A DNA stretch of 64,000 nt from Dicyema japonicum (GCA_011109175.1 RDEW01000018.1:913962-977961); one strand, 5' to 3'. Counted from the first letter of the stretch, positions 1 through 61,429 are shown. Numbers and translations: made by a program. The notes: generated by a model from the sequence alone, not told the origin.

Positions 1-46
1 TTGTTGGCCCTACCAATCTCAACAGGATGGTACCGATATTTCATTG

Positions 47-917
47 TTAAAAACATTTGAGGTAATCGATCAAATTATGTGGTAGTTCGCACAGTTTGTC
101 TCCGTTTTGGATCATAAAGTCAACGATATCTATGCAGTCTTTCATATTATTCATTAAATCAAATTCAATCTGAAATTAGGATTAAATATACAGGAAATAA
201 TGTCGGAGTAAAAACTATGGCCAAATTCTTACTATTCATATTGGGGGACCGATGACCGATTTCATGGAGGAAACAAAATAAGTTGAATATTCCACACTGA
301 ATATATCTCGGCATTAAACGAATTAAGATTGAGTAAGCAGTCAGTTTGTTGGCTTCTGTACATTCTAAACATTATTCCTAATATCCCACGTGGTGAAATC
401 AGTCGGACGGCTTCAATAAATTCAAGTGGAATTACTGAAGGCTCAAATGTACGAAGGAGTCGTTTTAGTGCACATGCCAACTCATGAATGGTAAAGTAGT
501 TCTGCACTTTAAGGAACTCATCTTTTTTCAGCAGCTCAATGATCTTTGTGACTTTATCATTGTTTCCACTCAATCTGAAGATTCCCTCCATTAAGTAGTC
601 TATGGTACATTACTCATATGACTACCCTTAAATGATTTAATTTTGTCCATTATCTGTTGGACTCTACTAATCAACCTCAATTTATCAGAATCTTCTATGC
701 TTATCTTATATCTCTTACCTTTAACCAGCGTTTTTTTCTTGCTAAAATTATGCATCTTTTTCTTTACTGGTACTTTAATTTCCATGAATTCGTGAACACA
801 CTCAACTTCTATGTACTGAAAGGCATGCATCATCATAACAGTCCTATAGCTTTCAGGGAAATTAATCATCATTGAAATAATGAACTCTTCAAGCATCAAA
901 CTGTTCACAAATAACAT
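47..917 (-). CDS. RhoGAP-domain protein (~265 aa), 3 micro-introns
   Basis: Removing GT-AG introns 600-625 (26 nt), 365-389 (25 nt) and 170-191 (22 nt) leaves 798 nt in frame to TAA at 47-49. The product contains FKDYLMEGIFRLSG (arginine finger), HELACALKRLLRTFEPSVIP and PNMNSKNLAIVFTPTLFP. The start codon is uncertain and extra upstream exons are possible. Confidence 0.87.
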
Positions 918-1689
918 TTAATGTAAGCGAACGGAATACTCAATTTAAATATAACCGGTTCCTTTACGAATATTACTTCCTTAGACTAATTGATTTAATT
1001 ATTATCATACTAAAATATTATTAATTCAAACAGCTATTAATAGTAGTATTTAACAATAATAGTCATCTCTCATTTACAACACGTGTGGAAGTTATTCATG
1101 TTACACGTCGATAGAACCTCCCCATGTCGATCTGGGGTCATTTACTTAGTTGGGAACTATCTCTTTTTCTTTGTAACCTTGTTATCCTGGGGTAATAATA
1201 GTGCTCTTTAACCGGATGTCTACATCGGAATCTTCAATAAGACCCTGTCGTTGGGAGGCCACCTAGAAATAAGAAGCTGAGAATATCTTCAACAATCACT
1301 TGACCACTACCACAAAGTTTCCCATTACTTGAATCCACTAACCAGAGACACACCTGGAGAACACTCAGGAAAATCTAATCTCCAGCAAAAGAACAAACCT
1401 GGACCAAGAGTAAAAAAACTTCGTATCTACGCATGTCATACGGACCCTCGAAGTGAACAAGATAATGGATCAGAGACTTCATGAGATAACACTTTAGAAA
1501 TGCTTCCCCGTGGGCCTTCAGACTGGAACGTGCACACCTCCGATGTGGGCATCATCTATATCTTGTTGGAAGAGTTGTTCAGGATCTCTTTACTTGCCCT
1601 GGAACATAAACGTGGATTGTATAACGTCAAGATGGGTCCCAATACTTCGGGAGTGCATTGATTCTTTACCGCTCCCGTGGATCTCTAAG

Positions 1690-2560
1690 AAACTAGACAG
1701 GCGCGTAGGGGGTTGCTATTCAGCAGTTTCTCAAACATACCTTCACACATGCTTTTACAAAGGTTTTTCTGGGATGGGAAACTTCCGACTACTCCGCATT
1801 GTTGGTCTCTGATGATTCTGTGAGAGGTGAGGATCACATTGACCAACACCTGAATGGAGTTTAGGGAAAAATGGGGGTGTTCTAAATCTATGGGAGTGTG
1901 GATTTCCAGATCGCCGAAGCAGACAAATAGGATGCTTGGTCCATTCTTGATCGTCAAATTTCAGTTTCGTACAACGTTCAATAGTGGAAGGAAGAGGGAG
2001 TGATTAGATTGAACTGTTTTATTCTTAGAACCAAGGTACCTTGTGGTTGTGGTGGACATGTTTCAGTTTTGTGCTAATAGGGAGTTCCTCAATAGAACAT
2101 GATGTATACCCGTCCAGCGTCTCAAGATGTGCGAATGTCATTTTATTTGTCCTCCTTTGAGAGTATCTCTAATTTCACGTCTTAAAGGGTATCCAAGTAC
2201 CTCCAGTTGGTGTGATGGTCTCCGAGGGCTTTGGAATGATCTATCAAAACGAGAAAAAATCAGATTAAATTCAAAGTGGGGGAATCCAAAATTGGTGACC
2301 TCACATTTTGAAGTATTAAGACTAAAGTCGAGGCTCTCCTGTTGAAGCATTAGTCTTCTTAGATTCTCTAACACATTGTTTGTTGGTCACCATAGTTCGT
2401 CATCAAAGTATATAGATTAACACCCCGTCACTAAATTGAACAAGAGCTGGTTGCAGTGGATCCCCTTTTGGAGACCCGAGGACGAGATAATGAAGTATTT
2501 GCTGTGACCCAGGCTTGACGTTTTTGTGTAAGGGCCACGCCCATATTTGTATTTTGAGGG
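1690..2560 (-). mobile_element. Decayed RT region of a CRE-like non-LTR retrotransposon
   Basis: Frameshifted motifs SSSGLQKGDPL, YFDD, FSLNTSKCEV, LEVLGYPL, FDDQEW and GDLEIHTPIDL appear in the order expected for CRE-like RT and thumb. Confidence 0.55.
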
Positions 2561-2808
2561 AGAGTCCTCCAAAATTACATCACGACGTATGCTGTCGAAG
2601 GTGTTTTAACATCAATTTGGGAATCATGGGGAATATTCATGTCTTTGAGCGTAACTGTCAAAACAGAGTGTACTTTTACTTCTCAACCTTCGAGACTGTC
2701 GACCCCTACTTCATTGGCTTAAGAGATCACACAAAAAACCAGACAACTTAAACACCAAAACTTGCTCTCAATAAATTTTAAGGTTTAAGACATACAATTT
2801 GTTAAAAA

Positions 2809-3804
2809 TCAAATAATCTCAAAATCTCCATTGGCAAATACCCTAATGGATCGCTCAGGAATACACGACAGCTCCCCCAGTGCTAATTCCTTCTTATAAT
2901 CAACGACAGTCTCCTCTGCCGAACATTCACTCAAATCAATATAAAAAGGGAGTAACGGGGACTTATGCAACTTCACCCCCACTGTCTTTATATTATTCCA
3001 CTCCTGGAATTTTAACGACGATTCTACTAAAGGCTTCAATTATGTTATCAGTCAAGAACTGCTCCCCCAACGAGCTGGTCCCAACCATGAAAGAACTAAA
3101 AGATGAGGACCAATCTTACCTAGTAGAAGCTCCCCCTCGAATAATACAGCCAATAGTGCACAAAGCTCGACGGACTTCTCTTGGAAGACTGAACTCTGAG
3201 CAATTCAAGGGAATCGGGATCCTGAGTTAACCCACATTTACTTTGCACAAGTCATAAACTTTGACCCCAGAAAATTACGCACGTGATGCTTTATAGACTT
3301 GTCTACCCAAAATACATCAAATGAGGCGCCCAGGTTTCTTTTAGCCTCAAAGGGTATGAACTCTTGTTTGAGCTTCATCATTGGGAAGATCTGGGGTCAA
3401 CAATAAAAGAACCTCAATGGATTCTAGGCATTTCATGTTATTGAGTCTTTGTTTGACTGTCTCGACTGTGTGATGTACACCCACGCCTTCGTTGAGTCTG
3501 AGAGCTATTAATTCGTGTTGTAGCACCTCCTGCTGGTCAACGGAAGGTAACTTGAGGTCTTTGTGGAATAAACAGATTTGCGGATTTTCTGGCACAGTTC
3601 TGTGAGGAAGTCTGCAATAAATTATGGTTTTGGATGATTTTAGGGATTTCTTGAGTGAAAATTGAACGTATATTTTGGATTCTGCAGAGGAATTAAAAAT
3701 GTCCTTATTTTCCTTAGACAATTTTGTATTATATTGTAACAATGCATGAACTGCTTCTTTAACCTACATAAGAGAAATTTTGTCACCTTATTTGAATTTA
3801 ACAT
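2809..3804 (-). CDS. RSL1D1: Ribosomal L1 domain-containing protein 1 (Utp30/CSIG family, ~301 aa), 4 micro-introns, one +1 frameshift
   Basis: Introns 3764-3786 (23), 3391-3412 (22), 3222-3241 (20) and 3096-3119 (24). The spliced product has VKEAVHALL, LPHR..ICLFHKD, FEAKRNLGASFDVFWVD, KIPIPLN and IP.WNNIKTVGVK..SPLLPFY, which match the RSL1D1 pattern. One extra base lies near 3001. Confidence 0.85.
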
Positions 3805-3909
3805 AAAACTGAATCAAAAGCACGTGCAATGTAATCTTTATAAATATAATTTTAAATAATTTAAAAAATATAATATAAATATTTTAAATAAGCTATTATA
3901 TAAAATGTC

Positions 3910-4780
3910 CTTTAATAATAATAATAAAAATGGAAAGTGCCCGTAAGGCCAGTTAGGTAAGTGGCCAATTGGTTGGAAAGTTGAGGTGGTCCTTGTCATC
4001 CTTCTCATGAGATTGGACGAAATGATTCACTCGGAAGACATCGAAAACTTGAATTTTTGAACAAAGTAAGTGTCTGATGCTCATAGGATCTGTATTCGAA
4101 TCTTGTCCAGTTTGAAATTAAAGGAACATTGAGGATCATCTGTCACGAACTTCGTGTATAGGAAATTAGTTGGTATGCTTATACTTGTTATGCCAATATC
4201 TAGCCACATTCCTGAACTTACCACCATTTGGAGTCTTTCCTATCCGTAAAGACAAGGATCATTTGGATCCCGATTAGACTAAGTCGGAATATAGAATAAT
4301 ACAACTTCAACAATTTTTTACTAACCAGGAAATGAAGAGGAATACTACCTTGGATTCTTACTTATCCTCCTTTTCATAGTTGGGGGATAAAATTGGACGA
4401 AGCACTTGGAAGAGTTGAGAAGAATAGAAAGTGAAATCAGGGGAGCTATTGGAATCTTCTTGAATTGTGGAAGAGGGTGCATTTAGGCGGTGGTCGTTCA
4501 GGCATACTAAATGGTCCTGTTCAGATAGGATATGAAGTTAAGGGAAGTTCACCAAGCAGGACTCTTGGCCTTAAAATTCCAACAAATTAAAAAGTTTTCA
4601 ATGGTGGAAAGGCTGAATAGTCGGTGAAGGTAGTCCCCTGAGCAACTTTTTGTGGTGGAATGTAGAGATTAAAGATCGTGTGAGGTTTAAAAAACTACCG
4701 GTATCCCACAAGCACAATAATACATATCATCTAGTGTCTTGGAGTACCAATGGTCAAGTCATAAAGGGTCAACATAGTGC
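3910..4780 (-). mobile_element. Internally deleted APE-type non-LTR remnant with (TTA)n tail
   Basis: Broken APE motifs LTIFNLYIPP, FVG.FKAKSPAW and NSSPDFTF at 4400-4700; (TTA)4 tail near 3915. Confidence 0.5.
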
Positions 4781-4886
4781 AAGTCCACGTTATAGACAGT
4801 AAAAAACAAAATAATCCGTAATTGGCGAAACAAAAAAAATTCAAAAAATCAAAATAAATAGAATTTAAAAATATAAATAAAAACTA

Positions 4887-6494
4887 TCAATGTCTGGAAG
4901 AGTTGGTGTACCTCATAGCATCGTGCTTATTAAAAATGCAGAGGAATGTAATCAAAGCGGAAATCAGGAAAATAATGTTGAACCACCTTTGGTAAAAATC
5001 AAATCTAAGGCCTTCCAAAATGGAAGTAATTATGGTCCTATACTCCGGAGGCACAGTGGACCTCATCAGTAACACGGAGGAGACACAGTACATCCCCTAA
5101 CCAATGAGACCATAATCTACCATGATCTCCGCCATCACCAAAAACAATAATGTCAGAAAAGGTCCCTTCGTTTGCCGCCCCTGTGAACAACCTCTCAAGA
5201 TTCAACAGAAGACCCCTCACACTGGTCACTGCCAGGATCCCCACTGCCATAAACGACGCCTGTTGAGACCACAGTTTCACCTATGCCATAAAATAGCTCA
5301 CTACGTCAATGTCGATCGAAAGAAAGCCTACCAAGATCGCTATTCCATTAGTAACGGGGTCCGCCCCGCCCACACGATTAAGTAGAATGCTGACGATCGT
5401 CTAAAGGTCACTCAAAATGCCACAATAAAAATCTTCCAGCAGCAGTAACCGAAGAACAACCAACCGACGATGTTGAAATAGATCCCCTTGTAGGTTAGTG
5501 ACTCTAGTATGAGTTTCTAATGGGTGAGAGTGGTGGGTACCCGCTGTCTGGCCAACTCTCGATATTCAAGGTAGTACCAGGTGAACGAATCCTCTAGCAG
5601 TTCAATCTCACGTGCTAGTTTTCCTAGGCTTCAATACAAGATAAACCGATCTCATCGTCCTCTGAGCTGAAATACTTGGAAAAAACGTGGAAACTCCGAC
5701 TTTTGAGAAGGTTTTCCTCGTTCCTTAAAAGTATGAGTCTACGCTTAGAGCCACGTGGACCTCCTTTTCTTTCCAATAATCATATTCAGTGTGACCATGA
5801 CCTGGTTCTTGGCAAACTCAACGTCCCGATCCTCGACTCGGCTAAAATCAAAAGAAGAGGTACCAGAGGAAGTAGAACATGGTATTGTAAGGGTAGGTGA
5901 TGACTCCGACCCCTGACAGAAGGGCAATAACGGCGACTCCAATGATTCCAACTCGACGACCGCCTGCTCGAGAGAGAGGTACCCTGGGTTGGGGAAAGAA
6001 AAATACCTGCCTTGTGGGAAATGAATGGGAACGGATTTCCGATCTTCCAGAAGAGGCAGAATAGGAAGGCCCAAAGAAGGGTGATGAGGAACCGACGAAG
6101 ACTACGATTAGCTGGAATATAAGAGAAGGATACTGAATGGGAGAGACTGCACAAGGGTGTAAGCCATGTGGAGGGGAATAACGAAAATTATGAAGAAAAT
6201 CATCATCACGAGGCTGAACTTCCAATGAAAATGGCGGGAACTAGGCTTGGGAATAAGTAATACTCTTGGGAGAGGATATCGAGGATCTCGAAAATTATTA
6301 GTTCAAATAAGGTGCACGAGAAGGCGAAGGTGAGGGAGAAAAGGAGAATCACGCTGAAGTTACGGATTTGGTAGTCACGGAAAAGTTTTTCGAGGAAGAA
6401 TATCCACGATCCAAGGAAGAAGATGATCTGTTTTGGTTAAAGAATAGAATACCTGGCTTGCTAAGACAACTATAGAATCTATAACGATCGGCAT
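4887..6494 (-). CDS. GPR89: Golgi pH regulator GPR89/GPHR (~450 aa), 11 micro-introns, two single-base frameshifts
   Basis: Introns 6428-6452, 6241-6263, 6112-6133, 5984-6006, 5842-5863, 5739-5760, 5624-5646, 5517-5540, 5401-5423, 5281-5304 and 5097-5120 (22-25 nt, all GT-YAG). The spliced length is 1353 nt. The product has MPIVIDSIVVLASQIIFF, FAFSCTLFELIIFEIL, SRHFHWK, RVGIIGV..IALLSG, DPVTNGI, VKLWSQQASF..VTSVRGLL, IMGMYCVSSVLL and FYQRWFNIIFLISAL. One base is missing at 5957/5958 and there is one extra T in the run at 5140-5144. Confidence 0.95.
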
Positions 6495-6594
6495 CAGCAC
6501 ATGAACGTAGAATTCTTTTGGATTATTTATATTTTATTATATAAATTAAAAAATTAATATCACTATATTTTATTTCAAATATTATTATTTCAAA

Positions 6595-7325
6595 TTGATC
6601 CATAGATGGAATGCTCTGGCATCCAACCTAGTCAGCCGGCTCTCTGGACATCGCCTGGATTGTTTCCAAAATTCGAGGGAGGCGGTTGATGGATCTTGGC
6701 TTGGGGTTTACCCATGTCAAGAAGTTGGTGGATTGTTGGATGATGACTCACTTCGTACAGCTGTATGTCTACACCTCGGATTGCCTGTTTGCACCAAATC
6801 GAAGTGCAAATGTGGCTGTCTATCGGACGAACTGGGTCTCCACCTCCTCTCATGCCGGAGCGGAATTGGCAGATCTTCTCGACATTCGGCAATGAACGGC
6901 ATCATTAAGAAAGCATTAGAATCGGCTGGATTCCGTTGCCGGATCGAACCGACTGGTCTATTTGACAACGGAAGACGCCCTGACGGCATGACCTCCTTTC
7001 CTTTTGAGCGAGGGCGAAACCTTGTATGGGATGTGACCTGTGTCTGCTCTTTCGCCCCAAGCAAAAAAATTATTCACCGGGCAGACCTTCTTCTCAAGCA
7101 GAGGAAGTAAAAAATGCTAAATACTCTGATATCAGCGACAGGTACATTTTCGCACCTGTCGCGATTGAAACTTCGGGGAACTTTGGCCCTTCCTGAACCA
7201 TTTGGGAAAACTACTAACTGACAAAACTGGTGATCTTCGTGAGACGAGATGGCTCAAGGAGAGGCTCTCGTTGGCTGTTGTCCGTGGGAATAGCTTGTGC
7301 ATCTCCCAACAGCTGAATTAAAATT
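6595..7325 (+). mobile_element. 3' part of a CRE-like RLE retrotransposon (zinc knuckle plus restriction-like endonuclease)
   Basis: GLLDDDSLRTAVCLHLG, CKCG..LHLLSC..GRSSRH, RRPDG..WDVTC, FAPVAIETSG and LSLAVVRGN; frameshifted after ~7065. Confidence 0.85.
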
Positions 7326-7485
7326 AACTATTCTTTTTCCATTTAAAATTTTGTAAAAAAAAAAAAATCGTTTAAGTGTTTTTATTTTTAATAAAACCGG
7401 GGAGGAGCATCGGGCCAAGATGAGGTCCCTGCTAGAGCGTGCTGGGATCACGTGATTAGTTAGTTTGTGTGACCGTGGTCTGGTG

Positions 7486-7503
7486 TTATTATTATTATTA
7501 TTA
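7486..7503 (+). repeat. (TTA)6 microsatellite, probably a retroelement tail
   Basis: Perfect (TTA)6 read directly from the sequence. The tail interpretation is inference. Confidence 0.6.
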
Positions 7504-10249: not shown

Positions 10250-10325
10250 TGGTCCCCGACCGGATTCGAACCGGCAACATAGTGACTTTGAAACCACTGC
10301 TCTAAAAATTGGAGCTACGAGGACC
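10250..10325 (-). tRNA. Atypical tRNA-like gene, type 1 (UUUCAAAG loop), copy 1
   Basis: GGTCCTCG/CGGGGACC 8-bp acceptor plus A, D stem GCTC/GAGC, T arm GCCGG-TTCGAAT-CCGGT, followed by a T-run. The anticodon arm is non-canonical. The D loop reads CAATTTTTA here and CAATGTTTA in the other copies. Confidence 0.7.
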
Positions 10326-10476
10326 ATTTCTATTGTTCTATATTCCTATTAGCCTCTGCATCTCAATATCCTTGGTATGATCTCCCTTTTTCCAATCCTG
10401 GATCCTCAATTAACGAAACAGTAGTACAATAATCATGCAACGAAATGTACAATCAATAAAACTTTATTCGAGTTGC

Positions 10477-11530
10477 ATGCATCGTTGTGATTGTAGTGGT
10501 CGAAATACAAGACTCACTATCGAACAAAAAATGCAAATATTGCGTTATAATGACGACAACAACATATTATAATGCAAAGAATTGCTGATAAAATTCCTTT
10601 TTTAAAACTGAAAAATTGCAGAAAGACTGTTAACTTATCTAAATATGTCGCGAGTCAAATTTGAAACAATTCAAAACTAAAAACTCTTCAACAAAAACAG
10701 TCAAAAATTTAAAAGTTTCCGCAACTGATGAAAAGCTCGTTAAGTGAATGGATTTGATAGATTCAAAAGGTTTACTTAATGTTTTTAAATTTTAAAGTGC
10801 ATTATTGCCATGTAAAACAGAATTCTTTGTTAAGCTCTTTCTCTAGACTATTTCAAAAAATCATGGATTATAATCCATATTTAAGAAAATGGATTAATTT
10901 TAGATTAGGAAATTACACGGACAAATGTGTACACACAATAATGTCGACATTGAAAGGTTTTTCAAAGAATTTAAAGAGGTTTCAAAATCATATACCTGCA
11001 TCAGATTTATTACCTGGATAAAACTGGTCTTTTTACAAGCTTTTTCCATCAAGAAGTAGTATTCGCAAGACTCCATTTGGAGGATAAAAGAAATTAAAAG
11101 ATAGAGTATCTGTGAAGTCATTCACAAATATTTTTGGAAATCATAAAATAATGGCGTTTATTCATTGGAAAATCAAAATGTAAAATGTTTCAGAAAATAT
11201 GATCATCGGTATTCTGTTTCATCTTATAATGCCAAAGATCGTCTACTTTATTTTACGACGTATTATTCTTTAGTCTAGTCTCATACCAGGCACAGAGACA
11301 TCGATTCTGAGTTTCAAAAGTCAATAGGTTTGTTAGATGAAAAGGCCTAATAATATTAACACCAGAGACTACGGTTAATCAAACTAACTATTCACGTTAT
11401 ATCAGCACGCACTAGCATAGATCTCATCTTGGCCCGATGCTCTTTCCTCGACCCTAAACAACCACGTGTTGGTCGATTGACATAAGGCAGCTTATATCAG
11501 ATGCAGCAAGGGATGGTATTCTATCAAATT
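10477..11530 (+). mobile_element. Decayed pogo/Tigger (CENP-B-like, DDE_1) transposase, submonomer A
   Basis: Stitched frames give RLTIEQKMQILRY (CENP-B N-terminal HTH), DEKLV.WMDL (Tc5 HTH), KLHGQMC, IYNLDKTGLFYK (N.DETGL motif) and KKFKDRVSV. Sister copies lie at about 15829-16880, 21174-22220 and 26513-27560. Confidence 0.8.
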
Positions 11531-11689
11531 AGAGCAAAAGTAAAAGTCTTTAATTATCATTTAATAATCATGAAAATTAGCAGTCAATATTAAATTAATA
11601 ATATTCCCAAATTTTAAGCCACATCACCCTTTAATATCAGGTCGATCACCTTTAGGCTTTTTATGCGTTTTTTACGATTTGAATTTATT

Positions 11690-12240
11690 TTGGGTTCTGC
11701 TGAATTCTTATCAAAGTCAAGGAAGGAAACTAGTTTAAAACATTCGGTTAATTTTCCGTTGTAGATCTCCTACCATAGTAAGTAGGAAAACCTCAGGAAC
11801 TTCCAAACATTTCGATACCTGTTCTAGCTCACTAGTTACACGGTATTGAGTTTCACTTTTTTTAGGAATCTTTAATATCTCAATATTCAGAGTGTTAAAA
11901 TTATCTACGTAATTCTCTACCCTATCAGTCATACTACTATTACTCACATCCGCCATACTACTTATTTGTTATTCAAGTGCTTCCAGCTCTGTCTGTCTCC
12001 ATGCATTCATGGCTAAGATCTGCTCCCTCCATTTACGTGGAGGTCTGTTCTAGTACGTCAACTCAACGTAGGTGATCTGTTTTGGATACATCACATTGGA
12101 GATGTGACCAGATGATTTTACTGGCTAGTTTTGCCGGACTGACTATGCCACTGCCTAGCTTCGCCAAGTATAGCCAGCTATTCAAGAGCATCCAGGATAG
12201 CATGCTACTTGGGTATAGTTATATATTGTGCTAAAGATAG
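11690..12240 (-). mobile_element. 5'/N-terminal fragment of the RLE-type element, present downstream of every full tRNA-like copy
   Basis: Nearly identical to 10010-10130, then deletes ~270 bp and rejoins at the CAGATCACCTA block (9680-9730). Encodes PVKSSGHISNVMY..QITY..KWREQ. Recurs at about 15130-15480, 17030-17580, 22380-22930, 27720-28270, 34630-35180, 41870-42420 and 49440-49990. Confidence 0.7.
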
Positions 12241-12368
12241 CTCTTGCCCAAATCGAGATCGATTTAATGGGAGTGGTACCAGTATAAACGAATAAGATGT
12301 TCGAGTAAGCGAAGACTATAAGTAGAAAGTTTTTTCTATTTTTTGAAAAAATTTAAACATCAAAAAAA

Positions 12369-12444
12369 TGGTCCCCGACCGGATTCGAACCGGCAACATA
12401 GTGACTTTGAAACCACTGCTCTAAACATTGGAGCTACGAGGACC
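12369..12444 (-). tRNA. Atypical tRNA-like gene, type 1, copy 2
   Basis: Same 76-nt sequence with a T7 terminator. Confidence 0.7.
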
Positions 12445-12595
12445 ATTTCTATTGTTCTATATTCCTATTAGCCTCTGCATCTCAATATCCTTGGTATGAT
12501 CTCCCTTTTTCCAATCCTGGATCCCCAATTAACGAAACAGTAGTACAATAATCATGCAACGAAATGTACAATCAATAAAACTTTATTCGAGTTGC

Positions 12596-13670
12596 ATGCA
12601 TCGTTGTGATTGTAGTGGTCGAAATACAAGACTTACTATTGAACAAAAAATGCAAATATTGCGTTATAATGACGGCAACAACATATTATAATGCCAAAGA
12701 ATTGCTGATAAATTTTCCTTTTTCTAAAGTGAACATTTGCCGGAAAACAGTTATCCTTATCTTAATATATCGAGAGTCAATTTTAAAACAATTCAAATCT
12801 AAAAACTTTTCAACAAAAACAGTCAAAAAGTAAAAGTTTCCCCAACTTGATGAAAAGCTTGTTGAGTGGATGGATTTGATGGAATCAAAAAGCTTTCTTA
12901 AAGTTTTTTTAATTTTAAAGTGCATTAGTGCTATGTAAGGCAGAATATCCATTAAGATAAAATTCTTCGCTAAGAAACGATCTCTTGACTATTTCAAAAA
13001 CTCTTATGGAGTTGTATAAAAATTTAAAATAAGAAATTAAATTCGGATTAGGGAATTACATGGACAAATGTGCACACACAAAAGCGTCGACATTGAAGGG
13101 TTTTTCAGATTTTCAAGAGGTTTCAAAATCATATACCTGCGATCAGATTTATAACTGGAAGAAAATGGGATTTTTAAAAGCTTATTCCATCCAGAAGTAT
13201 CTGCAAGAATCCATTCGGAGGATAAAAGAAATTCAAAGATAGAGTATCTGTGATGTTATGCACAAATATGTTAGGAAATCATAAATTAAAGCTCACTATT
13301 CATTGGAAAATCAAAAAAGTGCAAAGTGTTTCAAAAAATATTATTATCGGTGTTCTGTTTCGTATTACAGTGCCAAAGAGCGTCTACTTAATTTTACAGA
13401 GACATATTCTAAAGTCTACTGTCATAAGTGTCTCAGAGATATCGGTTCAGTGTTCTCCACAAATCAAAAGCTCCGTTACACTGAAAGCCTAATAATTTTA
13501 ACACCAGAGACCATGGTTACACAAACTAACTTATCACGTGATTCCAGCACGCACAAGCATGGACCTCAATTTGTCACGATGCTCCTCCCTCGACCCCACA
13601 CAAGCACGTATCGGTCGATTCACCTATGGTAGTTTACATCAAATGCAGCAAGGGAGGGTTTTCTAGCAAT
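12596..13670 (+). mobile_element. Decayed pogo/Tigger transposase, submonomer B
   Basis: LDEKLVEWMDLMESK, KFKDRVSVMLCTNMLGNHKLK and GKSK..CFKKY..YYSAK. Sister copies lie at about 17933-19010, 23281-24350 and 28626-29068 (truncated). Confidence 0.8.
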
Positions 13671-14061
13671 TTAAATCAATAGTAAAAGTCTTTAATTATC
13701 ATTTAATTATCATGAAAATTAGCAGTCAATATTAAATTAATAAAAACATTCAAATCCTAAGCCACATCACCCTTTAATAATCAGGTCGATGCACTTTAGG
13801 CATACTTATGCGTTTTTACGTGTTGACTTTATTTTAGGTTCTGCTGAAATCCTATCCAAGACAAGGAAATCAAGCTCGTTTAAAACATTCGGTTGATTTT
13901 CCGTTTAGATCCTAACCATAGTAGACTCGAAAACCTCAGGAACTTCCACAACTTTCGATGCCTGTACTGGCTCATTTGTACAACGGTATTGATTTTCACA
14001 TTTTTCTTAGGAATCTTTAATTTATCCAAATTCAGACCATCAAAATTATCCACGTCATCCT

Positions 14062-15125
14062 CAGGTTTGCCAATTTCACTAAATGGGTAAATAATCAAAT
14101 AAATAGTTTATTCGGCTGAGTTAGTAGAATTTTGTCATCTTCAATCGGAATAGAAACTTGGGAGCAATTTTTCTCAATTCCAACGTTCAGTCTTTTACCC
14201 CATTTGTTTACTAATCCACTTGTCTAAAACGTGTCTAAATAGCAGGAATCAGCTACCCATAGGAATCGGTATTTTCGTTTGAACTTGATTAATCAGTGAA
14301 TTCAACTCAGATCAGATATAGGTTCATAACATGCAGTTACTTCCTCCTATTTGAACAAATCACGTCAAAAACAATTTCCAAACGGCTTCCAAGAAACAGC
14401 TCAATGGAAACATAATCGAAGGGAAGTAGATACTTCCTCCTCTTACTTCTAGTAACATAGAGGACAGGAAAGCGTCCATACTTCTTATCACTTCAACCAC
14501 CAGACGGTCATAGTAAATACCTGCTTCAATAATGTGGTAATCCACTGTATGAACAGTGTGCACAAACCTAGTCACTATTTAATGTCAGAGAAATTCACGA
14601 ATCACATAAAGAAGTAGAAATAAATGGCACGCAGGAGAAAAAAACTGGGAGACTACAAGAGTTGGCGTTCTTCTAAATGACCACCTGTAGGTTTTAATAG
14701 TTCTTATGAATGGGATCTGTCTCCTATGAAAATAACTTAGATTGAAAAATTAGTACAGGATTTCACGCAGTGAGAAATTTAGAGTAAGAACCAAGAAACT
14801 CCTGATCAATACGAAAAAATTAATAATTGACAGATTCACTTATCAAAAAAGTCTAATCAATCATCTTGATTTATTACATTCTATAGTAAATTTTATTATA
14901 AAAGAATTTTTCCAATTTTTTATTAAGCTTTTTAAGAAAATCCTCATTTTTGGGGAAAACCTCAAAATTAGGGAATTTTACTTTATTTCGGGGTCGGACT
15001 TGAACATTTATGTTAAACCGTAGATGAGAAATTATTGACTCGACTATGAATAATGAGATTACTCGAAGACATATGAAATATCAACAACCTATCGAATGTC
15101 AAGTCCATTTTACAAACAAAAAGTA
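14062..15125. other. ~1.07 kb insertion of unknown origin interrupting the RLE fragment in the long submonomer
   Basis: Absent from the short submonomer, and both sides resume the ENYVDNF-coding segment. Also present at about 19400-20470 and 24740-25810. Confidence 0.55.
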
Positions 15126-15601
15126 GCGTGTTAAAATTATATACGTAATTCTCTACCCTATCAGTCATACTACTTCTACCCCATCCGCCATACTACTTAT
15201 TTGTTATTACAGTGCTTCATGCTCTGTCTGTCTCCATGCAATCATGGCAAAGAGCTGCTCCCTCCAATTACGTGGTGGTCTGTTCTAGTACGTCAACTCA
15301 ACGTAGGTGATCTGTTCTGGATACATCACATTATAGATGTGACCAGATAATTTTACTGGCAGTTTTGCTGGACAGATTATGCCACTGCAGAGCTCCTCCA
15401 ATTATGGCCAGCCATTCAAGAGCATCCAGGATAGCATGCTACTTGGGTATAGTTATATATTGTGCTAAAAATAGCTCTTGCCCAAAGCGAGATCGATTTA
15501 ATGGGAGTGGTACCAGTATAAACGAATAAGATGTTCGAGTAAGCGAGAACTATAAGTAGAAAGTTTTTTCTATTTTTTGAAAAATTTAAACATCAAAAAA
15601 A

Positions 15602-15677
15602 TGGTCCCCGACCGGATTCGAACCGGCAACATAGTGACTTTGAAACCACTGCTCTAAACATTGGAGCTACGAGGACC
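15602..15677 (-). tRNA. Atypical tRNA-like gene, type 1, copy 3
   Basis: Same 76-nt sequence. Confidence 0.7.
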
Positions 15678-17705
15678 ATTTCTATTGTTCTATTTTCCTA
15701 TTAGCCTCTGCATCTCAATATCCTTGGTATGATCTCCCTTTTTCCAATCCTGGATCCCCAATTAACGAAACAGTAGTACAATAATCATGCAACGAAATGT
15801 ACAATCAATAAAACTTTATTCAAGTTGCATGCATCGTTGTGATTATAGTGGTCGAAATACAAGACTCACTATCGAACAAAAAATGCAAATATTGCGTTAT
15901 AATGACGACAACAACATATTATAATGCAAAGAATTGCTGATAAATTTTCTTTTTTCAAAACCGAAAATTTGCAGAAAGACTGTTAACTTATCTTAATATG
16001 TCGCGAGTCAAATTTGAAACAATTCAAAACTAAAAACTCTTCAACAAAAACGTCAAAAATTAAAAAGTTTCCGCAACATGATGAAAAGCTTGTCAAGTGA
16101 ATGGATTTGATAGATTCAAAAGGTTTACTTAATGTTTTTAAATTTTAAAGTGCATTATTGCCATGTAAAACAGAATTCTTTGTTAAGCTCTTTCTCTAGA
16201 CTATTTCAAAAAATCATGGATCATAATCCATATTTAAGAAAATGGATTAATTTTAGATTAGGAAATTACACGGACAAATGTGTAAACACAATAATGTCGA
16301 CATTGAAAGGTTTTTCAAAAAATTTAAAGAGGTTTCAAAATCATATACCTGCATCAGATTTATTACCTGGATAAAACTGGGCTTTTTACAAGCTTTTTCC
16401 ATCAAGAAGTAGTATTCGCAAGACTCCATTTGGAGGATAAAAGAAATTCAAAGATAGAGTATCTGTGAAGTCATTCACAAATATTTGTGGAAATCATAAA
16501 ATAATGGCGTTTATTCATTGGAAAATCAAAATGTAAATGTTTCAGAAAATATGATCATCGGTATTCTGTTTCGTCTTATAATGCCAAAGATCGTCTACTT
16601 TATTTTACGACGTATTATTCTTTAGTCTAGTCTCATACCAGGCACAGAGACATCGATTCTGAGTTTCAAAAGTCAATAGGTTTGTTAGATGAAAAGGCCT
16701 AATAATATTAACACCAGAGACTACGGTTAATCAAACTAACTATTCACGTTATATCAGCACGCACTAGCATAGATCTCATCTTGGCCCGATGCTCTTTCCT
16801 CAACCCTAAACAACCACGTGTTGGTCGATTGACATAAGGCAGCTTATATCAGATGCAGCAAGGGATGGTATTCTATCAAATTAGAGCAAAAGTAAAAGTC
16901 TTTAATTATCATTTAATAATCATGAAAATTAGCAGTCAATATTCCCAAATTTTAAGCCACATCACCCTTTAATATCAGTTCGATCACCTTTAGGCTTTTT
17001 ATGCGTTTTTTACCATTTGAATTTATTTTGGGTTCTGCTGAATTCTTATCAAAGTCAAGGAAGGAAACTAGTTTAAAACATTCGGTTAATTTTCCGTTGT
17101 AGATCTCCTACCATAGTAAGTAGGAAAACCTCAGGAACTTCCAAACATTTCGATACCTGTTCTAGCTCACTAGTTACACGGTATTGAGTTTCACTTTTTT
17201 TAGGAATCTTTAATATCTCAATATTCAGAGTGTTAAAATTATCTACGTAATTCTCTACCCTATCAGTCATACTACTATTACCCCATCCGCCATACTACTT
17301 ATTTGTTATTCCAGTGCTTCCAGCTCTGTCTGTCTCCATGCATTCATGGCTAAGATCTGCTCCCTCCATTTACGTGGAGGTCTGTTCTAGTACGTCAACT
17401 CAACGTAGGTGATCTGTTTTGGATACATCACATTGGAGATGTGACCAGATGATTTTACTGGCTAGTTTTGCCGGACTGACTATGCCACTGCCTAGCTTCG
17501 CCAAGTATAGCCAGCTATTCAAGAGCATCCAGGATAGCATGCTACTTGGGTATAGTTATATATTGTGCTAAAGATAGCTCTTGCCCAAAGCGAGATCGAT
17601 TTTCTGGGAGAGGTACCAGTATAAACGAATAAGATGTTCGAGTAAGCGAAGACTATAAGAAGAAAGTTTTTTCTATTTTTTGAAAAAATTTAAACATCAA
17701 AAAAA

Positions 17706-17781
17706 TGGTCCCCGACCGGATTCGAACCGGCAACATAGTGACTTTGAAACCACTGCTCTAAACATTGGAGCTACGAGGACC
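17706..17781 (-). tRNA. Atypical tRNA-like gene, type 1, copy 4
   Basis: Same 76-nt sequence. Confidence 0.7.
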
Positions 17782-20700
17782 ATTTCTATTGTTCTATATT
17801 CCTATTAGCCTCTGCATCTCAATATCCTTGGTATGATCTCCCTTTTTCCAATCCTGGATCCCCAATTAACGAAACAGTAGTACAATAATCATGCAACGAA
17901 ATGTACAATCAATAAAACTTTATTCGAGTTGCATGCATCGTTGTGATTGTAGTGGTCGAAATACAAGACTCACTATCGAACAAAAAATGCAAATATTGCG
18001 TTATAATGACGACAACAACATATTATAATGCCAAAGAATTGCTGATAAATTTTCCTTTTTCTAAAGTGAACATTTGCCTGAAAACAGTTAACCTTATCTT
18101 AATATATCGAGAGTCAATTTTAAAACAATTCAAATCTAAAAACTTTTCAACAAAAACAGTCAAAAAGTAAAAGTTTCCCCAACTTGATGAAAAGCTTGTT
18201 GAGTGGATGGATTTGATGGAATCAAAAAGCTTTCTTAAAGTTTTTTTAATTTTAAAGTGCATTAGTGCTATGTAAGGCAGAATATCCATTAAGATAAAAT
18301 TCTTCGCTAAGAAACGATCTCTTGACTATTTCAAAAACTCTTATGGAGTTGTATAAAAATTTAAAATAAGAAATTAAATTCGGATTAGGAAATTACATGG
18401 ACAAATGTGCACACACAAAAGCGTCGACATTGAAGGGTTTTTCAGATTTTCAAGAGGTTTCAAAATCATATACCTGCGATCAGATTTATAACTGGAAGAA
18501 AATGGGATTTTTAAAAGCTTATTCCATCCAGAAGTATCTGCAAGAATCCATTCGGAGGATAAAAGAAATTCAAAGATAGAGTATCTGTGATGTTATGCAC
18601 AAATATGTTAGGAAATCATAAATTAAAGCTCACTATTCATTGGAAAATCAAAAAAGTGCAAAGTGTTTCAAAAAATATTATTATCGGTGTTCTGTTTCGT
18701 ATTACAGTGCCAAAGAGCGTCTACTTAATTTTACAGAGACATATTCTAAAGTCTACTGTCATAAGTGTCTCAGAGATATCGGTTCAGTGTTCTCCACAAA
18801 TCAAAAGCTCCGTTACACTGAAAGCCTAATAATTTTAACACCAGAGACCATGGTTACACAAACTAACTTATCACGTGATTCCAGCACGCACAAGCATGGA
18901 CCTCAATTTGTCACGATGCTCCTCCCTCGACCCCACACAAGCACGTATCGGTCGATTCACCTATGGTAGTTTACATCAAATGCAGCAAGGGAGGGTTTTC
19001 TAGCAATTTAAATCAATAGTAAAAGTCTTTAATTATCATTTAATTATCATGAAAATTAGCAGTCAATATTAAATTAATAAAAACATTCAAATCCTAAGCC
19101 ACATCACCCTTTAATAATCAGGTCGATGCACTTTAGGCATACTTATGCGTTTTTACGTGTTGACTTTATTTTAGGTTCTGCTGAAATCCTATCCAAGACA
19201 AGGAAATCAAGCTCGTTTAAAACATTCGGTTGATTTTCCGGTTAGATCCTAACCATAGTAGACTCGAAAACCTCAGGAACTTCCACAACTTTCGATGCCT
19301 GTACTGGCTCATTTGTACAACGGTATTGATTTTCACATTTTTCTTAGGAATCTTTAATTTATCCAAATTCAGACCATCAAAATTATCCACGTCATCCTCA
19401 GGTTTGCCAATTTCACTAAATGGGTAAATAATCAAATAAATAGTTTATTCGGCTGAGTTGGTAGAATTTTGTTATCTTCAATCGGAATAGAAACTTGGGA
19501 GCAAATTTGCTCAATTCCAACGTTCAGTCTTTTACCCCATTTGTTTACTAATCCACTTGTCTAAATCGAGTCTAAATAGCAGGAATCAGCTACCCATAGG
19601 AATCGGTATTTTCGTTTGAACTTGATTAATCAGTGAATTCAACTCAGATCAGATATAGGTTCATAACATGCAGTGACTTCCTCCTCTTTGAACAAATCAC
19701 GTCAAAAACAATTTCCAAACGGCTTCCAAGAAACAGCTCAATGGAAACATAATCGAAAGGAGGAAGGGAAGTAGATGCTTCCTCCTTTACTTTTAGTAAC
19801 ATAGAGGACAGGAAAGCGTCCATACTTGCTTATCACTTCAACCACCAGACGGTCATAGTAAATACCTGCTTCAATAATGTGGTAATCCACTGTATGAACA
19901 GTGTGCACAAACTGAGTCACTATTTAATGTCAGAGAAATTCACGAATCACATAAAGAAGTAGAAATAAATGGCACGCAGGAGAAAAAAAATGGGAGACTA
20001 CAGGAGTTGGCGTTCTTCTAAATGACCACCTGTAGGTTTTAATAGTTCTTATGAATGGGATCTGTCTCCTATGAAAATAACTTAGATTGAGAAATTAGTA
20101 CAGGATTTCACGCAGTGTGAAATTTAGAGTAAGAACCAAGAAACTCCTGATCAATACGAAAAAATTAATAATTGACAGATTCACTTATCAAAAAAGTCTA
20201 ATCAATCATCTTGATTTATTACATTCTATAGTAACTTTTATTATAAAAGAATTTTTCCAATTTTTTATTAAGCTTTTTAAGAAAATTTGCATTTTTCGGG
20301 AAAACCTCAAAATTAGGGAATTTTCCTTTATATCGGGGTCGGACTTGAACATTTATGTTGAACCGTAGACGAGAAATTATTGACTCGACTATGAATGATG
20401 AGGTTACTCGAAGACATATGAAATATCAACAACCTATCGAATGTCAAGTCCATTTTACAAACAAAAAGTAGCGTGTTAAAATTATATACGTAATTCTCTA
20501 CCCTATCAGTCATACTACTTTTACCCCATCCGCCATACTACTTATTTGTTATTACAGTGCTTCATGCTCTGTCTGTCTCCATGCAATCATGGCAAAGAGC
20601 TGCTCCCTCCATTACGTGGTGGTCTGTTCTAGTACGTCAACTCAACGTAGGTGATCTGTTCTGGATACATCACATTATAGATGTGACCAGATAATTTTAC

Positions 20701-20945
20701 TGGCAGTTTTGCTGGACAGATTATGCCACTGCAGAGCTCCGCCAATTATGGCCAGCCATTCAAGAGCATCCAGGATAGCATGCTACTTGGGTATAGTTAT
20801 ATATTGTGCTAAAGATAGCTCTTGCCCAAAGCGAGATCGATTTAATGGGAGTGGTACCAGTATAAACGAATAAGATGTTCGAGTAAACGAGAACTATAAG
20901 TAGAAAGTTTTTTCTATTTTTTGAAAAATTTAAACATCAAAAAAA

Positions 20946-21021
20946 TGGTCCCCGACCGGATTCGAACCGGCAACATAGTGACTTTGAAACCACTGCTCTA
21001 AACATTGGAGCTACGAGGACC
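20946..21021 (-). tRNA. Atypical tRNA-like gene, type 1, copy 5
   Basis: Same 76-nt sequence. Confidence 0.7.
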
Positions 21022-23053
21022 ATTTCTATTGTTCTATTTTTCCTATTAGCCTCTGCATCTCAATATCCTTGGTATGATCTCCCTTTTTCCAATCCTGGAT
21101 CCCCAATTAACGAAACAGTAGTACAATAATCATGCAACGAAATGTACAATCAATAAAACTTTATTCAAGTTGCATGCATCGTTGTGATTATAGTGGTCGA
21201 AATACAAGACTCACTTTCGAACAAAAAATGCAAATATTGCGTTATAATGACGACAACAACATATTATAATGCAAAGAATTGCTGATAAATTTTCTTTTTT
21301 AAAACTGAAAAATTGCAGAAAGACTGTTAACTTATCTAAATATGTCGCGAGTCAAATTTGAAACAATTCAAAACTAAAAACTCTTCAACAAAAACAGTCA
21401 AAAATTAAAAGTTTCCGTAACTGATGAAAAGCTCGTTAAGTGAATGAATTTGATAGATTCAAAAGGTTTACTTAATGTTTTTAAATTTTAAAGTGCATTA
21501 TTGCCATGTAAAACAGAATTCTTTGTTAAGCTCTTTCTCTAGACTATTTCAAAAAATCATGGATCATAATCCATATTTAAGAAAATGGATTAATTTTAGA
21601 TTAGGAAATTACACGGACAAATGTGTACACACAATAATGTCGACATTGAAAGGTTTTTCAAAAAATTTAAAGAGGTTTCAAAATCATATACCTGCATCAG
21701 ATTTATTACCTGGATAAAACTGGGCTTTTTACAAGCTTTTTCCATCAAGAAGTAGTATTCGCAAGACTCCATTTGGAGGATAAAAGAAATTCAAAGATAG
21801 AGTATCTGTGAAGTCATTCACAAATATTTTGGAAATCATAAAATAATGGCGTTTATTCATTGGAAAATCAAAATATAAGATGTTTCAAAAAATATGATCA
21901 TCGGTATTCTGTTTCGTCTTATAATGCCAAAGATCGTCTACTTTATTTTACGACGTATTATTCTTTAGTCTAGTCTCATACCAGGCACAGAGACATCGAT
22001 TCTGAGTTTCAAAAGTCAATAGCTTTGTTAGATGAAAAGGCCTAATAATATTAACACCAGAGACTACGGTTAATCAAACTAACTATTCACGTTATATCAG
22101 CACGCACTAGCATAGATCTCATCTTGGCCCGATGCTCTTTCCTCGACCCTAAACAACCACGTGTTGGTCGATTGACATAAGGCAGCTTATATCAGATGCA
22201 GCAAGGGATGGTATTCTATCAAATTAGAGCAAAAGTAAAAGTCTTTAATTATCATTTAATAATCATGAAAATTAGCAGTCAATATTAAATTCCCAAATTT
22301 TAAGCCACATCACCCTTTAATATCAGGTCGATCACCTTTAGGCTTTTTATGCGTTTTTTACGATTTGAATTTATTTTGGGTTCTGCTGAATTCTTATCAA
22401 AGTAAAGGAAGGAAACTAGTTTAAAACATTCGGTTAATTTTCCGTTGTAGATCTCCTACCATAGTAAGTAGGAAAACCTCAGGAACTTCCAAACATTTCG
22501 ATACCTGTTCTAGCTCACTAGTTACACGGTATTGAGTTTCACTTTTTTTAGGAATCTTTAATATCTCAATATTCAGAGTGTTAAAATTATCTACGTAATT
22601 CTCTACCCTATCAGTCATACTACTATTACTCCATCCGCCATACTACTTATTTGTTATTCCAGTGCTTCCAGCTCTGTCTGTCTCCATGCATTCATGGCTA
22701 AGATCTGCTCCCTCCATTTACGTGGAGGTATGTTCTAGTACGTCAACTCAACGTAGGTGATCTGTTTTGGATACATCACATTGGAGATGTGACCAGATGA
22801 TTTTACTGGCTAGTTTTGCCGGACTGACTATGCCACTGCCTAGCTTCGCCAAGTATAGCCAGCTATTCAAGAGCATCCAGGATAGCATGCTACTTGGGTA
22901 TAGTTATATATTGTACTAAAGATAGCTCTTGCCCAAATCGAGATCGATTTTCTGGGAGTGGTACCAGTATAAACGAATAAGATGTTCGAGTAAGCGAAGA
23001 CTATAAGTAGAAAGTTTTTTCTATTTTTTGAAAAAATTTAAACATCAAAAAAA

Positions 23054-23129
23054 TGGTCCCCGACCGGATTCGAACCGGCAACATAGTGACTTTGAAACCA
23101 CTGCTCTAAACATTGGAGCTACGAGGACC
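23054..23129 (-). tRNA. Atypical tRNA-like gene, type 1, copy 6
   Basis: Same 76-nt sequence. Confidence 0.7.
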
Positions 23130-26100: not shown

Positions 26101-26285
26101 CAAGAGCATCCAGGATAGCATGCTACTTGGGTATAGTTATATATTGTGCTAAAGATAGCTCTTGCCCAAAGCGAGATCGATTTTCTGGGAGTGGTACTAG
26201 TATAAACGAATAAGATGTTCGAGTAAGCGAGAACTATAAGTAGAAAGTTTTTTCTATTTTTTGAAAAATTTAAACATCAAAAAAA

Positions 26286-26361
26286 TGGTCCCCGACCGGA
26301 TTCGAACCGGCAACATAGTGACTTTGAAACCACTGCTCTAAACATTGGAGCTACGAGGACC
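26286..26361 (-). tRNA. Atypical tRNA-like gene, type 1, copy 7
   Basis: Same 76-nt sequence. Confidence 0.7.
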
Positions 26362-28398
26362 ATTTCTATTGTTCTATTTTCCTATTAGCCTCTGCATCTC
26401 AATATCCTTGGTATGATCTCCCTTTTTCCAATCCTGGATCCCCAATTAACGAAACAGTAGTACAATAATCATGCAACGAAATGTACAATCAATAAAACTT
26501 TATTCGAGTTGCATGCATCGTTGTGATTATAGTGGTCGAAATACAAGACTCACTATCGAACAAAAAATGCAAATATTGCGTTATAATGCCGACAACAACA
26601 TATTATAATGCAAAGAATTGCTGATAAATTTTCTTTTTTAAAACTGAAAATTTGCAGAAAGACTGTTAACTTATCTTAATATGTCGCGAGTCAAATTTGA
26701 AACAATTCAAAACTAAAAACTCTTCAACAAAAACGTCAAAAATTAAAAAGTTTCCGCAACTGATGAAAAGCTTGTCAAGTGAATGGATTTGATAGATTCA
26801 AAAGGTTTACTTAATGTTTTTAAATTTTAAAGTGCATTATTGCCATGTAAAACAGAATTCTTTGTTAAGCTCTTTCTCTAGACTATTTCAAAAAATCATG
26901 GATCATAATCCATATTTAAGAAAATGGATTAATTTTAGATTAGGAAATTACACGGACAAATGTGTACACAATAATGTCGACATTGAAAGGTTTTTCAAAA
27001 ATTTAAAGAGGTTTCAAAATCATATACCTGCATCAGATTTATTACCTGGATAAAACTGGGCTTTTTACAAGCTTTTTCCATCAAGAAGTAGTATTCGCAA
27101 GACTCCATTTGGAGGATAAAAGAAATTCAAAGATAGAGTATCTGTGAAGTCATTCACAAATATTTGTGGAAATCATAAAATAATGGCGTTTATTCATTGG
27201 AAAATCAAAATGTAAGATGTTTCAAAAATATGATCATCGGTATTCTGTTTCGTCTTATAATGCCAAAGATCGTCTACTTTATTTTACGACGTATTATTCT
27301 TTAGTCTAGTCTCATACCAGGCACAGAGACATCGATTCTGAGTTTCAAAAGTCAATAGCTTTGTTAGATGAAAAGGCCTAATAATATTAACACCAGAGAC
27401 TACGGTTAATCAAACTAACTATTCACGTTATATCAGCACGCACTAGCATAGATCTCATCTTGGCCCGATGCTCTTTCCTCGACCCTAAACAACCACGTGT
27501 TGGTCGATTGACATAAGGCAGCTTATATCAGATGCAGCAAGGGATGGTATTCTATCAAATTAGAGCAAAAGTAAAAGTCTTTAATTATCATTTAATAATC
27601 ATGAAAATTAGCAGTCAATATTAAATTAATAATATTCCCAAATTTTAAGCCACATCACCCTTTAATATCAGGTCGATCACCTTTAGGCTTTTTATGCGTT
27701 TTTTACGATTTGAATTTATTTTGGGTTCTGCTGAATTCTTATCAAAGTAAAGGAAGGAAACTAGTTTAAAACATTCGGTTAATTTTCCGTTGTAGATCTC
27801 CTACCATAGTAAGTAGGAAAACCTCAGGAACTTCCAAACATTTCGATACCTGTTCTAGCTCACTAGTTACACGGTATTGAGTTTCACTTTTTTTAGGAAT
27901 CTTTAATATCTCAATATTCAGAGTGTTAAAATTATCTACGTAATTCTCTACCCTATCAGTCATACTACTATTACCCCATCCGCCATACTACTTATTTGTT
28001 ATTCCAGTGCTTCCAGCTCTGTCTGTCTCCATGCATTCATGGCTAAGATCTGCTCCCTCCATTTACGTGGAGGTCTGTTCTAGTACGTCAACTCAACGTA
28101 GGTGATCTGTTTTGGATACATCACATTGGAGATGTGACCAGATGATTTTACTGGCTAGTTTTGCCGGACTGACTATGCCACTGCCTAGCTTCGCCAAGTA
28201 TAGCCAGCTATTCAAGAGCATCCAGGATAGCATGCTACTTGGGTATAGTTATATATTGTGCTAAAGATAGCTCTTGCCCAAATCGAGATCGATTTAATGG
28301 GAGTGGTACCAGTATAAACGAATAAGATGTTCGAGTAAGCGAAGACTATAAGTAGAAAGTTTTTTCTATTTTTTGAAAAAATTTAAACATCAAAAAAA

Positions 28399-28474
28399 TG
28401 GTCCCCGACCGGATTCGAACCGGCAACATAGTGACTTTGAAACCACTGCTCTAAACATTGGAGCTACGAGGACC
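28399..28474 (-). tRNA. Atypical tRNA-like gene, type 1, copy 8
   Basis: Same 76-nt sequence. Confidence 0.7.
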
Positions 28475-61420: not shown

Positions 61421-61429
61421 CACTCTCGT

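Follow-up and report, generated by a model that had tools for sequence, protein, structure and literature searches.

Three genes with introns of 20-25 nucleotides

The DNA analysed here is a 64,000-nucleotide (nt) stretch of the Dicyema japonicum genome assembly (GCA_011109175.1, RDEW01000018.1:913962-977961), referred to below as the window, and the genes treated lie at positions 47-6494. All three are on the minus strand: a gene with a RhoGAP domain, a gene resembling RSL1D1 with a ribosomal L1 domain, and GPR89, which encodes the Golgi pH regulator (GPHR). Together they hold 18 GT..YAG segments of 20-25 nt, with three in the RhoGAP gene, four in the RSL1D1-like gene and 11 in GPR89. One segment is 20 nt long, five are 22 nt, six are 23 nt, four are 24 nt and two are 25 nt, giving a mean of 23.0 nt and a standard deviation of 1.2 (n=18). 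An initial reading of the window from its letters, without database searches (the sequence-only reading), had proposed 18 introns in three genes, as found here, and had named the genes; GPR89 and RhoGAP were right, and RSL1D1 is plausible on weak scores. It had listed five introns of 23 nt and one of 26 nt and otherwise the same length classes in the same numbers. The only GT..AG segment of 26 nt at the right place, 5166-5191, gives rise to a stop codon when removed and was rejected.

Blocks of single open reading frames (ORFs) from positions 1-7000 were screened with Pfam, and splice segments were first searched for with a script that maximised ORF length over GT..AG segments of 18-30 nt. The script produced a sensible RhoGAP model and a mostly sensible RSL1D1 model; its GPR89 path of 467 codons was wrong, and homology-guided models were used instead. 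A query with the last GPR89 exon returned 419 matches spread across eukaryotes, and a mite GPHR query returned at least 120 animal GPHRs. The GPR89 introns were picked by score against profiles built from full-length GPHR homologues, and each chosen intron outscored all nearby same-frame GT..AG alternatives. The resulting model scored 466-470 bits against the homologue profiles (469.7 bits with the profile from full-length matches to the mite query).

GPR89 spans 1608 nt, of which 255 nt are intron and 1353 nt exon, in agreement with the earlier claim of 11 introns within 1.6 kb. Pfam recognised GPHR_N (PF12537; expectation value, E, 9.8e-8) and ABA_GPCR (PF12430; E 2.8e-13) on its exon pieces. 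After splicing, residues 3-450 of the 452 in the model aligned to full-length GPHRs, with an E of 2.8e-113 to a chytrid protein. Seventeen animal GPHRs, no cnidarian among them, were used for an identity comparison and for a tree. The window's protein was 42-46% identical to 16 of the 17, it contained no internal stops, and its four top scores went to the nemertean, oyster, tubeworm and freshwater mussel proteins.

Conserved intron positions in GPR89 and the remaining splice signals

The GPR89 introns were compared in position and phase with those of the GPHR loci of Capitella teleta, Lottia gigantea, Xiphophorus couchianus and Branchiostoma floridae, whose exons were mapped exactly; the comparison with orthologues covers GPR89. 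Nine of the 11 introns are identical in alignment column and phase to introns of Capitella, Lottia and Xiphophorus. The remaining two share the phase of their nearest counterparts but are displaced by 2 and 8 columns; taking intron 4 as a 23-nt segment (see below) turns the 8-column case into an exact match, and 10 of the 11 positions then coincide. The 42-nt first coding exon (14 codons) has SQ as its last two residues, and the intron behind it is in phase 0; this arrangement recurs in Xiphophorus and Lottia, as the sequence-only reading had stated for vertebrate GPR89. Its further claim that ancestral intron positions had been kept was thus borne out at nine of the 11 sites. The Capitella and Lottia genes each contain 14 introns of 49-29,696 nt at identical positions, and Xiphophorus shares 11 of these 14, with one more fish junction that could not be mapped. 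Three ancestral GPHR introns, at columns 36, 377 and 420, are lacking in the window's gene.

As a frame for chance agreement, about 14 sites are occupied among about 1350 possible ones. GT..AG pairs spaced 19-26 nt apart are common, with 191 on the minus strand of positions 1-6500. The longest ORF that splicing could restore in the real GPR89 stretch has 462 codons; in 40 mononucleotide shuffles of that stretch the median was about 84 codons and the best shuffle reached 395. Restoration of an ORF is therefore in itself only moderately significant, and suggestive. Sequence homology combined with the conservation of intron positions is the decisive evidence that these segments are introns.

All 18 segments begin with GT and end in AG, and in all 18 the AG is preceded by a pyrimidine (T in 12, C in six). 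The third intron position is an A in 11 of the 18, giving GTA, and no exon-side consensus was detected at the splice sites of the 18 introns. The introns are T-rich (38% T). An A at position -7 is enriched, occurring in 11 of the 18, and positions -8 and -9 are often A as well, in what is a small sample; an A located about 7 nt upstream of the AG may serve as branch point. Each of the four introns with a length divisible by three (3096-3119, 5097-5120, 5281-5304 and 5517-5540) carries an in-frame stop, which in three of them is the terminal TAG itself, so that retention would truncate the protein. In Paramecium, in-frame stops in introns with a length divisible by three are linked to nonsense-mediated decay of unspliced messenger RNA (mRNA).

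In the RhoGAP gene, two exon pieces matched the Pfam RhoGAP profile (PF00620, cut-off 24.5 bits): profile positions 19-80 were matched by the ORF at 262-591 (38.3 bits, E 1.6e-9) and positions 89-145 by the ORF at 168-371 (32.2 bits, E 1.1e-7), both above the cut-off. The arginine-finger motif GIFRLSG is present in the RhoGAP ORF. In the RSL1D1-like gene, the exon at 3241-3396 (52 residues) matched the Ribosomal_L1 profile (PF00687) with 27.4 bits and an E of 3e-6, below the cut-off of 32.2 bits. Its best match among solved structures was human RSL1D1, residues 128-174 (E 0.015), followed by Utp30/C8F11.04. A search with the 117-residue exon of the same gene returned no matches. The features of the three genes are collected in Table 1.

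Table 1. Coordinates in the window of the three genes, their introns and their frame breaks.
Feature	Position	Strand	Length (nt)	Phase	Remarks
RhoGAP-domain gene	47..917	-			model of about 266 codons; stop codon begins at 47
RhoGAP intron	600..622	-	23		GTC..TAG; connects N-terminal ORF to RhoGAP ORF, by ORF continuity alone
RhoGAP intron	365..389	-	25		GTG..TAG; Pfam profile continuous across it (about 85 to about 86)
RhoGAP intron	170..191	-	22		GTA..CAG; Pfam match stops at donor; downstream exon reaches the stop at 47
RSL1D1-like gene (ribosomal L1 domain)	2809..3804	-			model corrected with DNA contigs
RSL1D1 intron	3764..3786	-	23	0	after six-codon first exon MLNSNK; frame VKEAVHALL... 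restored
RSL1D1 intron	3391..3412	-	22	0	...CLESIE joined to IFPMMKLKQEF..., alignable with human RSL1D1 from residue 128 on
RSL1D1 intron	3222..3241	-	20	2	shortest secure intron; ...GSKFMTCAK/IPIPLN... in frame
RSL1D1 intron	3096..3119	-	24	2	contains in-frame TAA
RSL1D1 frame break	3000..3001	-			two bases missing from window
GPR89/GPHR gene (Golgi pH regulator)	4887..6494	-			12 exons (42-210 nt), 11 introns, 452-residue model, one break
GPR89 intron 1	6428..6452	-	25	0	column and phase as in Capitella, Lottia, Xiphophorus and Branchiostoma
GPR89 intron 2	6241..6263	-	23	2	column and phase as in Capitella, Lottia and Xiphophorus; top profile score among alternatives
GPR89 intron 3	6112..6133	-	22	1	column and phase as in Capitella, Lottia and Xiphophorus
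GPR89 intron 4, preferred	5984..6006	-	23	1	GT..CAG; exact conserved position of Capitella, Lottia and Xiphophorus; then 1-nt frame break at about 5960-5975
GPR89 intron 4, alternative	5964..5982	-	19		without frame break; eight codons downstream of conserved position
GPR89 intron 5	5842..5863	-	22	2	column and phase conserved
GPR89 intron 6	5739..5760	-	22	2	column and phase conserved
GPR89 intron 7	5624..5646	-	23	1	phase equal, two columns off the Capitella/Lottia intron; gap-rich variable stretch
GPR89 intron 8	5517..5540	-	24	0	column and phase conserved; in-frame terminal TAG
GPR89 intron 9	5401..5423	-	23	0	column and phase conserved; no other GT..AG possible
GPR89 intron 10	5281..5304	-	24	0	column and phase conserved; in-frame terminal TAG; 21-nt variant 6.3 bits lower
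GPR89 intron 11	5097..5120	-	24	0	column and phase conserved; in-frame terminal TAG
GPR89 frame break	5140..5144	-			T5 run (A5 on plus strand), between LERLF... and ...VMAEIMGMY

Around the genes, the spacers at 950-2800 and 3850-4890 contained no Pfam-recognisable ORFs and had no copies elsewhere in the window. Just beyond the start of GPR89, a plus-strand ORF at 6595-7110 encodes 171 residues rich in cysteine and histidine, with no Pfam match.

Searches with the last GPR89 exon found their closest matches among unnamed Logan fragments and insect proteins. The best of these (L005, positions 961-3076 of a 3.2-kb contig from Logan SRR18067577) is 58% identical over the exon and belongs to a complete GPHR gene of an animal, whose few introns measure about 50-350 nt and which lacks several ancestral introns. 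The protein of this gene is 41-56% identical to that of Lottia over two aligned halves and is nearer to Lottia than the window's protein is. With introns of such ordinary small size, the gene was ruled out as a micro-intron relative.

Frame breaks and comparison with sequencing runs

The sequence-only reading had stated that every intron restores a recognisable protein frame. This proved correct for the most part, except that a break at 5140-5144 in GPR89 is repaired by no GT..AG segment found there and that a break at 3000/3001 in the RSL1D1-like gene is an indel of the assembly. All deletions of 1-40 nt were scanned at the GPR89 break, and the best score came from shortening the T5 run at 5140-5144 by one base. 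A non-canonical intron at this place was considered and discarded, with deletions of 16 nt or more scoring worse and the best-scoring of them lacking GT..AG ends.

Contigs of four sequencing runs (X1, X2, X3 and X5) were compared with positions 501-6500 of the window. Those of X1-X3 are colinear with the window and span genes and spacers alike, and thus behave as DNA. Over these 6 kb the short-read DNA contigs of the same sample differ from the window by 23 indels, 12 of which were itemised (for example at 1119, 1386, 2094, 2399, 2442, 3000, 4565 and 4653), and single-nucleotide differences are also present. Several of the indel differences stand at full depth in X1, X2 and X3 alike, and an alignment of the window with the X1 DNA contig over 4758-6304 contains three gaps, at positions that were not listed. 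Behind position 3000, the DNA contigs of X1, X2 and X3 contain an additional CC, at full depth in X2 and X3. These two bases join the frame at 2996-3115 to that at 2812-3039 without an intron; the 19-nt segment at 3001-3019 that the ORF-maximising script had proposed as an RSL1D1 intron is therefore an artefact of the assembly indel and was dropped. Since the DNA contigs repair this break, the assembly carries indel errors. The indel pattern fits the D. japonicum assembly, which was merged from PacBio RS II and Illumina data (PMC6736024). Around 2312-2382 the DNA-run contigs split into several continuations, as they would at a repeat boundary.

Intron 4 of GPR89 can be modelled in two ways (Table 1). 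The 23-nt segment yields GYLSLEQAV, matching GILSIEQCI of the homologues, and with it the model gains 6-10 bits over the 19-nt model, even though an X stands at the break that follows. The 23-nt model is preferred here, and the 19-nt candidate at 5964-5982 is probably an artefact of the frame break. It could instead be a genuine intron that has slid eight codons from the ancestral site; if so, it would be the shortest of the 18 and would fall under the 20-27 nt classes analysed in PMC13644364.

The extra frame breaks in GPR89 and in the RSL1D1-like gene most likely stem from indels introduced by a long-read-based assembly and carry no biological meaning. It is very improbable that the break at 5140-5144, and possibly also that at about 5960-5975, is real and is corrected by insertion or deletion at the transcript level or by programmed +1 frameshifting. 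A frameshift in a gene of the D. japonicum assembly is accordingly not always an intron, and indels can mimic very short or non-canonical introns.

Lineage, alternative explanations and meaning

Micro-introns at conserved positions are already known from dicyemids (reports of 2007, 2010 and 2019) and from myxobolids (2026); as far as we found, the literature holds no individual description of the three genes treated here. For Dicyema, Aruga et al. (2007, PMC2222250) reported introns of 26.2 ± 1.9 nt (n=16), which in Zic and Pax6 occupy exactly the conserved positions. Very short introns were described in 40 D. japonicum genes, according to the account of that work (Ogino et al., 2010, Gene 449:70) given in PMC6543705. 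Both dicyemid genome papers of 2019 report very short introns, with a median of 27 nt in Dicyema sp., agreeing with Ogino 2010 (Zverkov et al., 2019, PMC6543705), and a mean of 38 nt, skewed by long introns, in the D. japonicum gene models (Lu et al., 2019, PMC6736024). Introns of D. japonicum and of myxobolids have been described as retaining GTa, AG and, before the AG, two or three weak A residues (PMC13644364), a description that the signals found here match. Hadjez et al. (2026, PMC13644364) added the myxobolids and concluded that introns below 30 nt arose at least twice in animals.

The genes of the window resemble those of dicyemids in their very short and uniform GT-AG introns at conserved positions, their fast-evolving proteins and their setting in a repeat-rich genome of similar GC (guanine plus cytosine) content, and also in an intron density normal for animals (3, 4 and 11 introns here, 4.9-6.2 per gene as published). 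They differ in length: the mean here is 23.0 nt (n=18), and the published values are a mean of 26.2 nt (n=16), a median of 27 nt and a mean of 38 nt. With myxobolids they share median lengths of 22-27 nt, the 5' signal GTa, a weak upstream A proposed as branch point, and conserved positions (PMC13644364). The myxobolids differ in being cnidarian, in a lower GC content (29% in Henneguya salminicola), in having few long interspersed nuclear elements (LINEs), and in keeping more of the 3' signal than D. japonicum (PMC13644364), whereas only YAG is found here. Ciliates (Paramecium, 20-35 nt; Stentor, 15-16 nt) have introns of the same length class with minimal splice signals; they are not animals, their introns do not sit at the ancestral metazoan positions, and Stentor introns are shorter than any found here. 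The statement in the sequence-only reading that every intron had shrunk close to a physical limit goes too far, given the 15-16 nt introns of Stentor and the median of 22 nt in two myxobolids (PMC13644364).

The window has a GC content of 36.8%. The published D. japonicum genome has 36.7% GC, a heterozygosity of 1.24% and 6.2 introns per gene; repeats, LINE ORF2 copies among them, make up 49% of it, and it was sequenced from one paired-end and four mate-pair libraries plus PacBio data, from dicyemids of a single octopus (PMC6736024). Outside the three genes the window is rich in retroelements, and ORFs with RVT_1 (best E 1.9e-28) and the integrase core rve_3 were found at 32150-32767, 39180-41079, 47364-48023 (minus strand) and 60948-62063 (minus strand). 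Eleven Rfam matches to transfer RNA (tRNA), with 32.6-38.5 bits, lie on the minus strand at 10251-28473, 35305-35379, 42544-42618 and 50117-50191. Seven of them score identically and are spaced alternately by about 2.1 and about 3.2 kb, as in a tandem higher-order array around a tRNA-like gene, and seven sites within this array show 84-85% identity to a 100-nt piece at 7400-7497.

The termini and lengths observed, the homology that splicing restores and the conservation of position and phase are read here as shrunken U2-type (GT-AG) spliceosomal introns in a fast-evolving, reduced animal genome that has mostly kept the ancestral intron positions, a reading to which we assign a probability of about 0.88. 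Ordinary U2-type introns would have shrunk to 20-25 nt in such a genome while most ancestral metazoan positions were retained, GPR89 keeping 11 of the 14 introns present in its annelid and mollusc orthologues. Each intron would be left with GT(a) as its 5' signal, YAG as its 3' signal and a candidate branch-point A about 7 nt before the AG. We infer from the genomic sequence that the 18 segments are removed from the mRNA; splicing in D. japonicum is documented genome-wide by gene models based on RNA-seq (PMC6736024). The suggestion in the sequence-only reading of a reduced animal parasite, dicyemid- or myxozoan-like, agrees with the GC content, the reverse-transcriptase ORFs, the type of assembly and the BLAST scores to spiralians, and a dicyemid origin of the genome is very probable.

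Several observations weigh against this account. No joints skipping an intron were seen at any intron in the X1-X3 contigs over 501-6500, which are DNA-like. Run X5, which dates from 2017, comprises 12 million letters and is possibly transcriptomic, contributed three short pieces only, all within RSL1D1 exons. It contains a fraction of 0.50 of the sampled words of 4880-6500, where a spliced GPR89 transcript was estimated to give about 0.6; this hints that X5 may be a transcriptome from which the spliced contig was lost in filtering. The RSL1D1 assignment, plausible from the exon matches, rests on weak scores. The mean of 23.0 nt falls short of published values for other Dicyema samples (26-27 nt) and is nearer to the 22-nt median of two myxobolids. 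Finally, the GPR89 phylogeny that the sequence-only reading had recommended for placing the organism was run and failed to do so: the window's sequence has a branch length of 2.04, falls weakly outside the animals and was left unplaced. Its position is probably the product of long-branch attraction.

In a rival reading, introns of the same kind belong to the genome of a myxobolid myxozoan, a parasitic cnidarian, and not to that of a dicyemid. Myxobolid medians of 22-27 nt with similarly reduced signals (PMC13644364) and a mean that is closer to 22 nt than to the dicyemid 26-27 nt speak for such an origin, and the GPR89 tree is uninformative between the two groups. We nevertheless regard it as unlikely, because the GC content, the repeat content, the type of assembly and the dates of the runs fit D. 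japonicum: H. salminicola has 29.1% GC against 36.8% in the window (PMC13644364), and transposable elements are described as relatively scarce in myxozoan genomes, with very little LINE sequence in M. honghuensis, whereas the window is full of reverse-transcriptase ORFs. The best GPHR BLAST scores also go to spiralians, by a small margin and in a comparison set that lacks cnidarians. Still less probable is a third, undescribed animal lineage in which introns below 30 nt evolved independently. Further lineages of this kind are expected by the authors of PMC13644364, and no near-identical proteins were found in protein collections by exact look-up of the last GPR89 exon or by a word-index search with the ORF at 5041-5280, which counts in favour of such a lineage; against it, the measurable properties of the genome all match published D. 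japonicum values, and the runs date from 2017 and 2019, the years in which a transcriptome (Lu et al., 2017, cited in PMC6543705) and the genome of that species were published.

The abundance of suitably spaced GT..AG pairs, the wrong 467-codon path obtained by pure ORF maximisation, the one shuffle in 40 that reached 395 codons and the presence of frame breaks in both GPR89 and the RSL1D1-like gene speak for the view that the segments are not spliced and that the genes are decaying pseudogenes in which short GT..AG stretches restore frames by chance. To this explanation we give almost no credence, since 9-10 orthologous matches in position and phase among 11 introns are not attainable by chance, every GPR89 exon is conserved at the level of identity given above with no internal stops, and the RSL1D1 break was demonstrated to be an assembly indel.

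Taken together, the three genes are best described as a gene-level illustration of intron shrinkage as published for dicyemids and myxobolids, contributing a GPR89 gene with 11 micro-introns, 9-10 of which are shared in position with an annelid, a mollusc and a fish. Introns of 20-25 nt test the minimum sequence that a canonical spliceosome needs, and intron positions can outlive almost all of the intron sequence.

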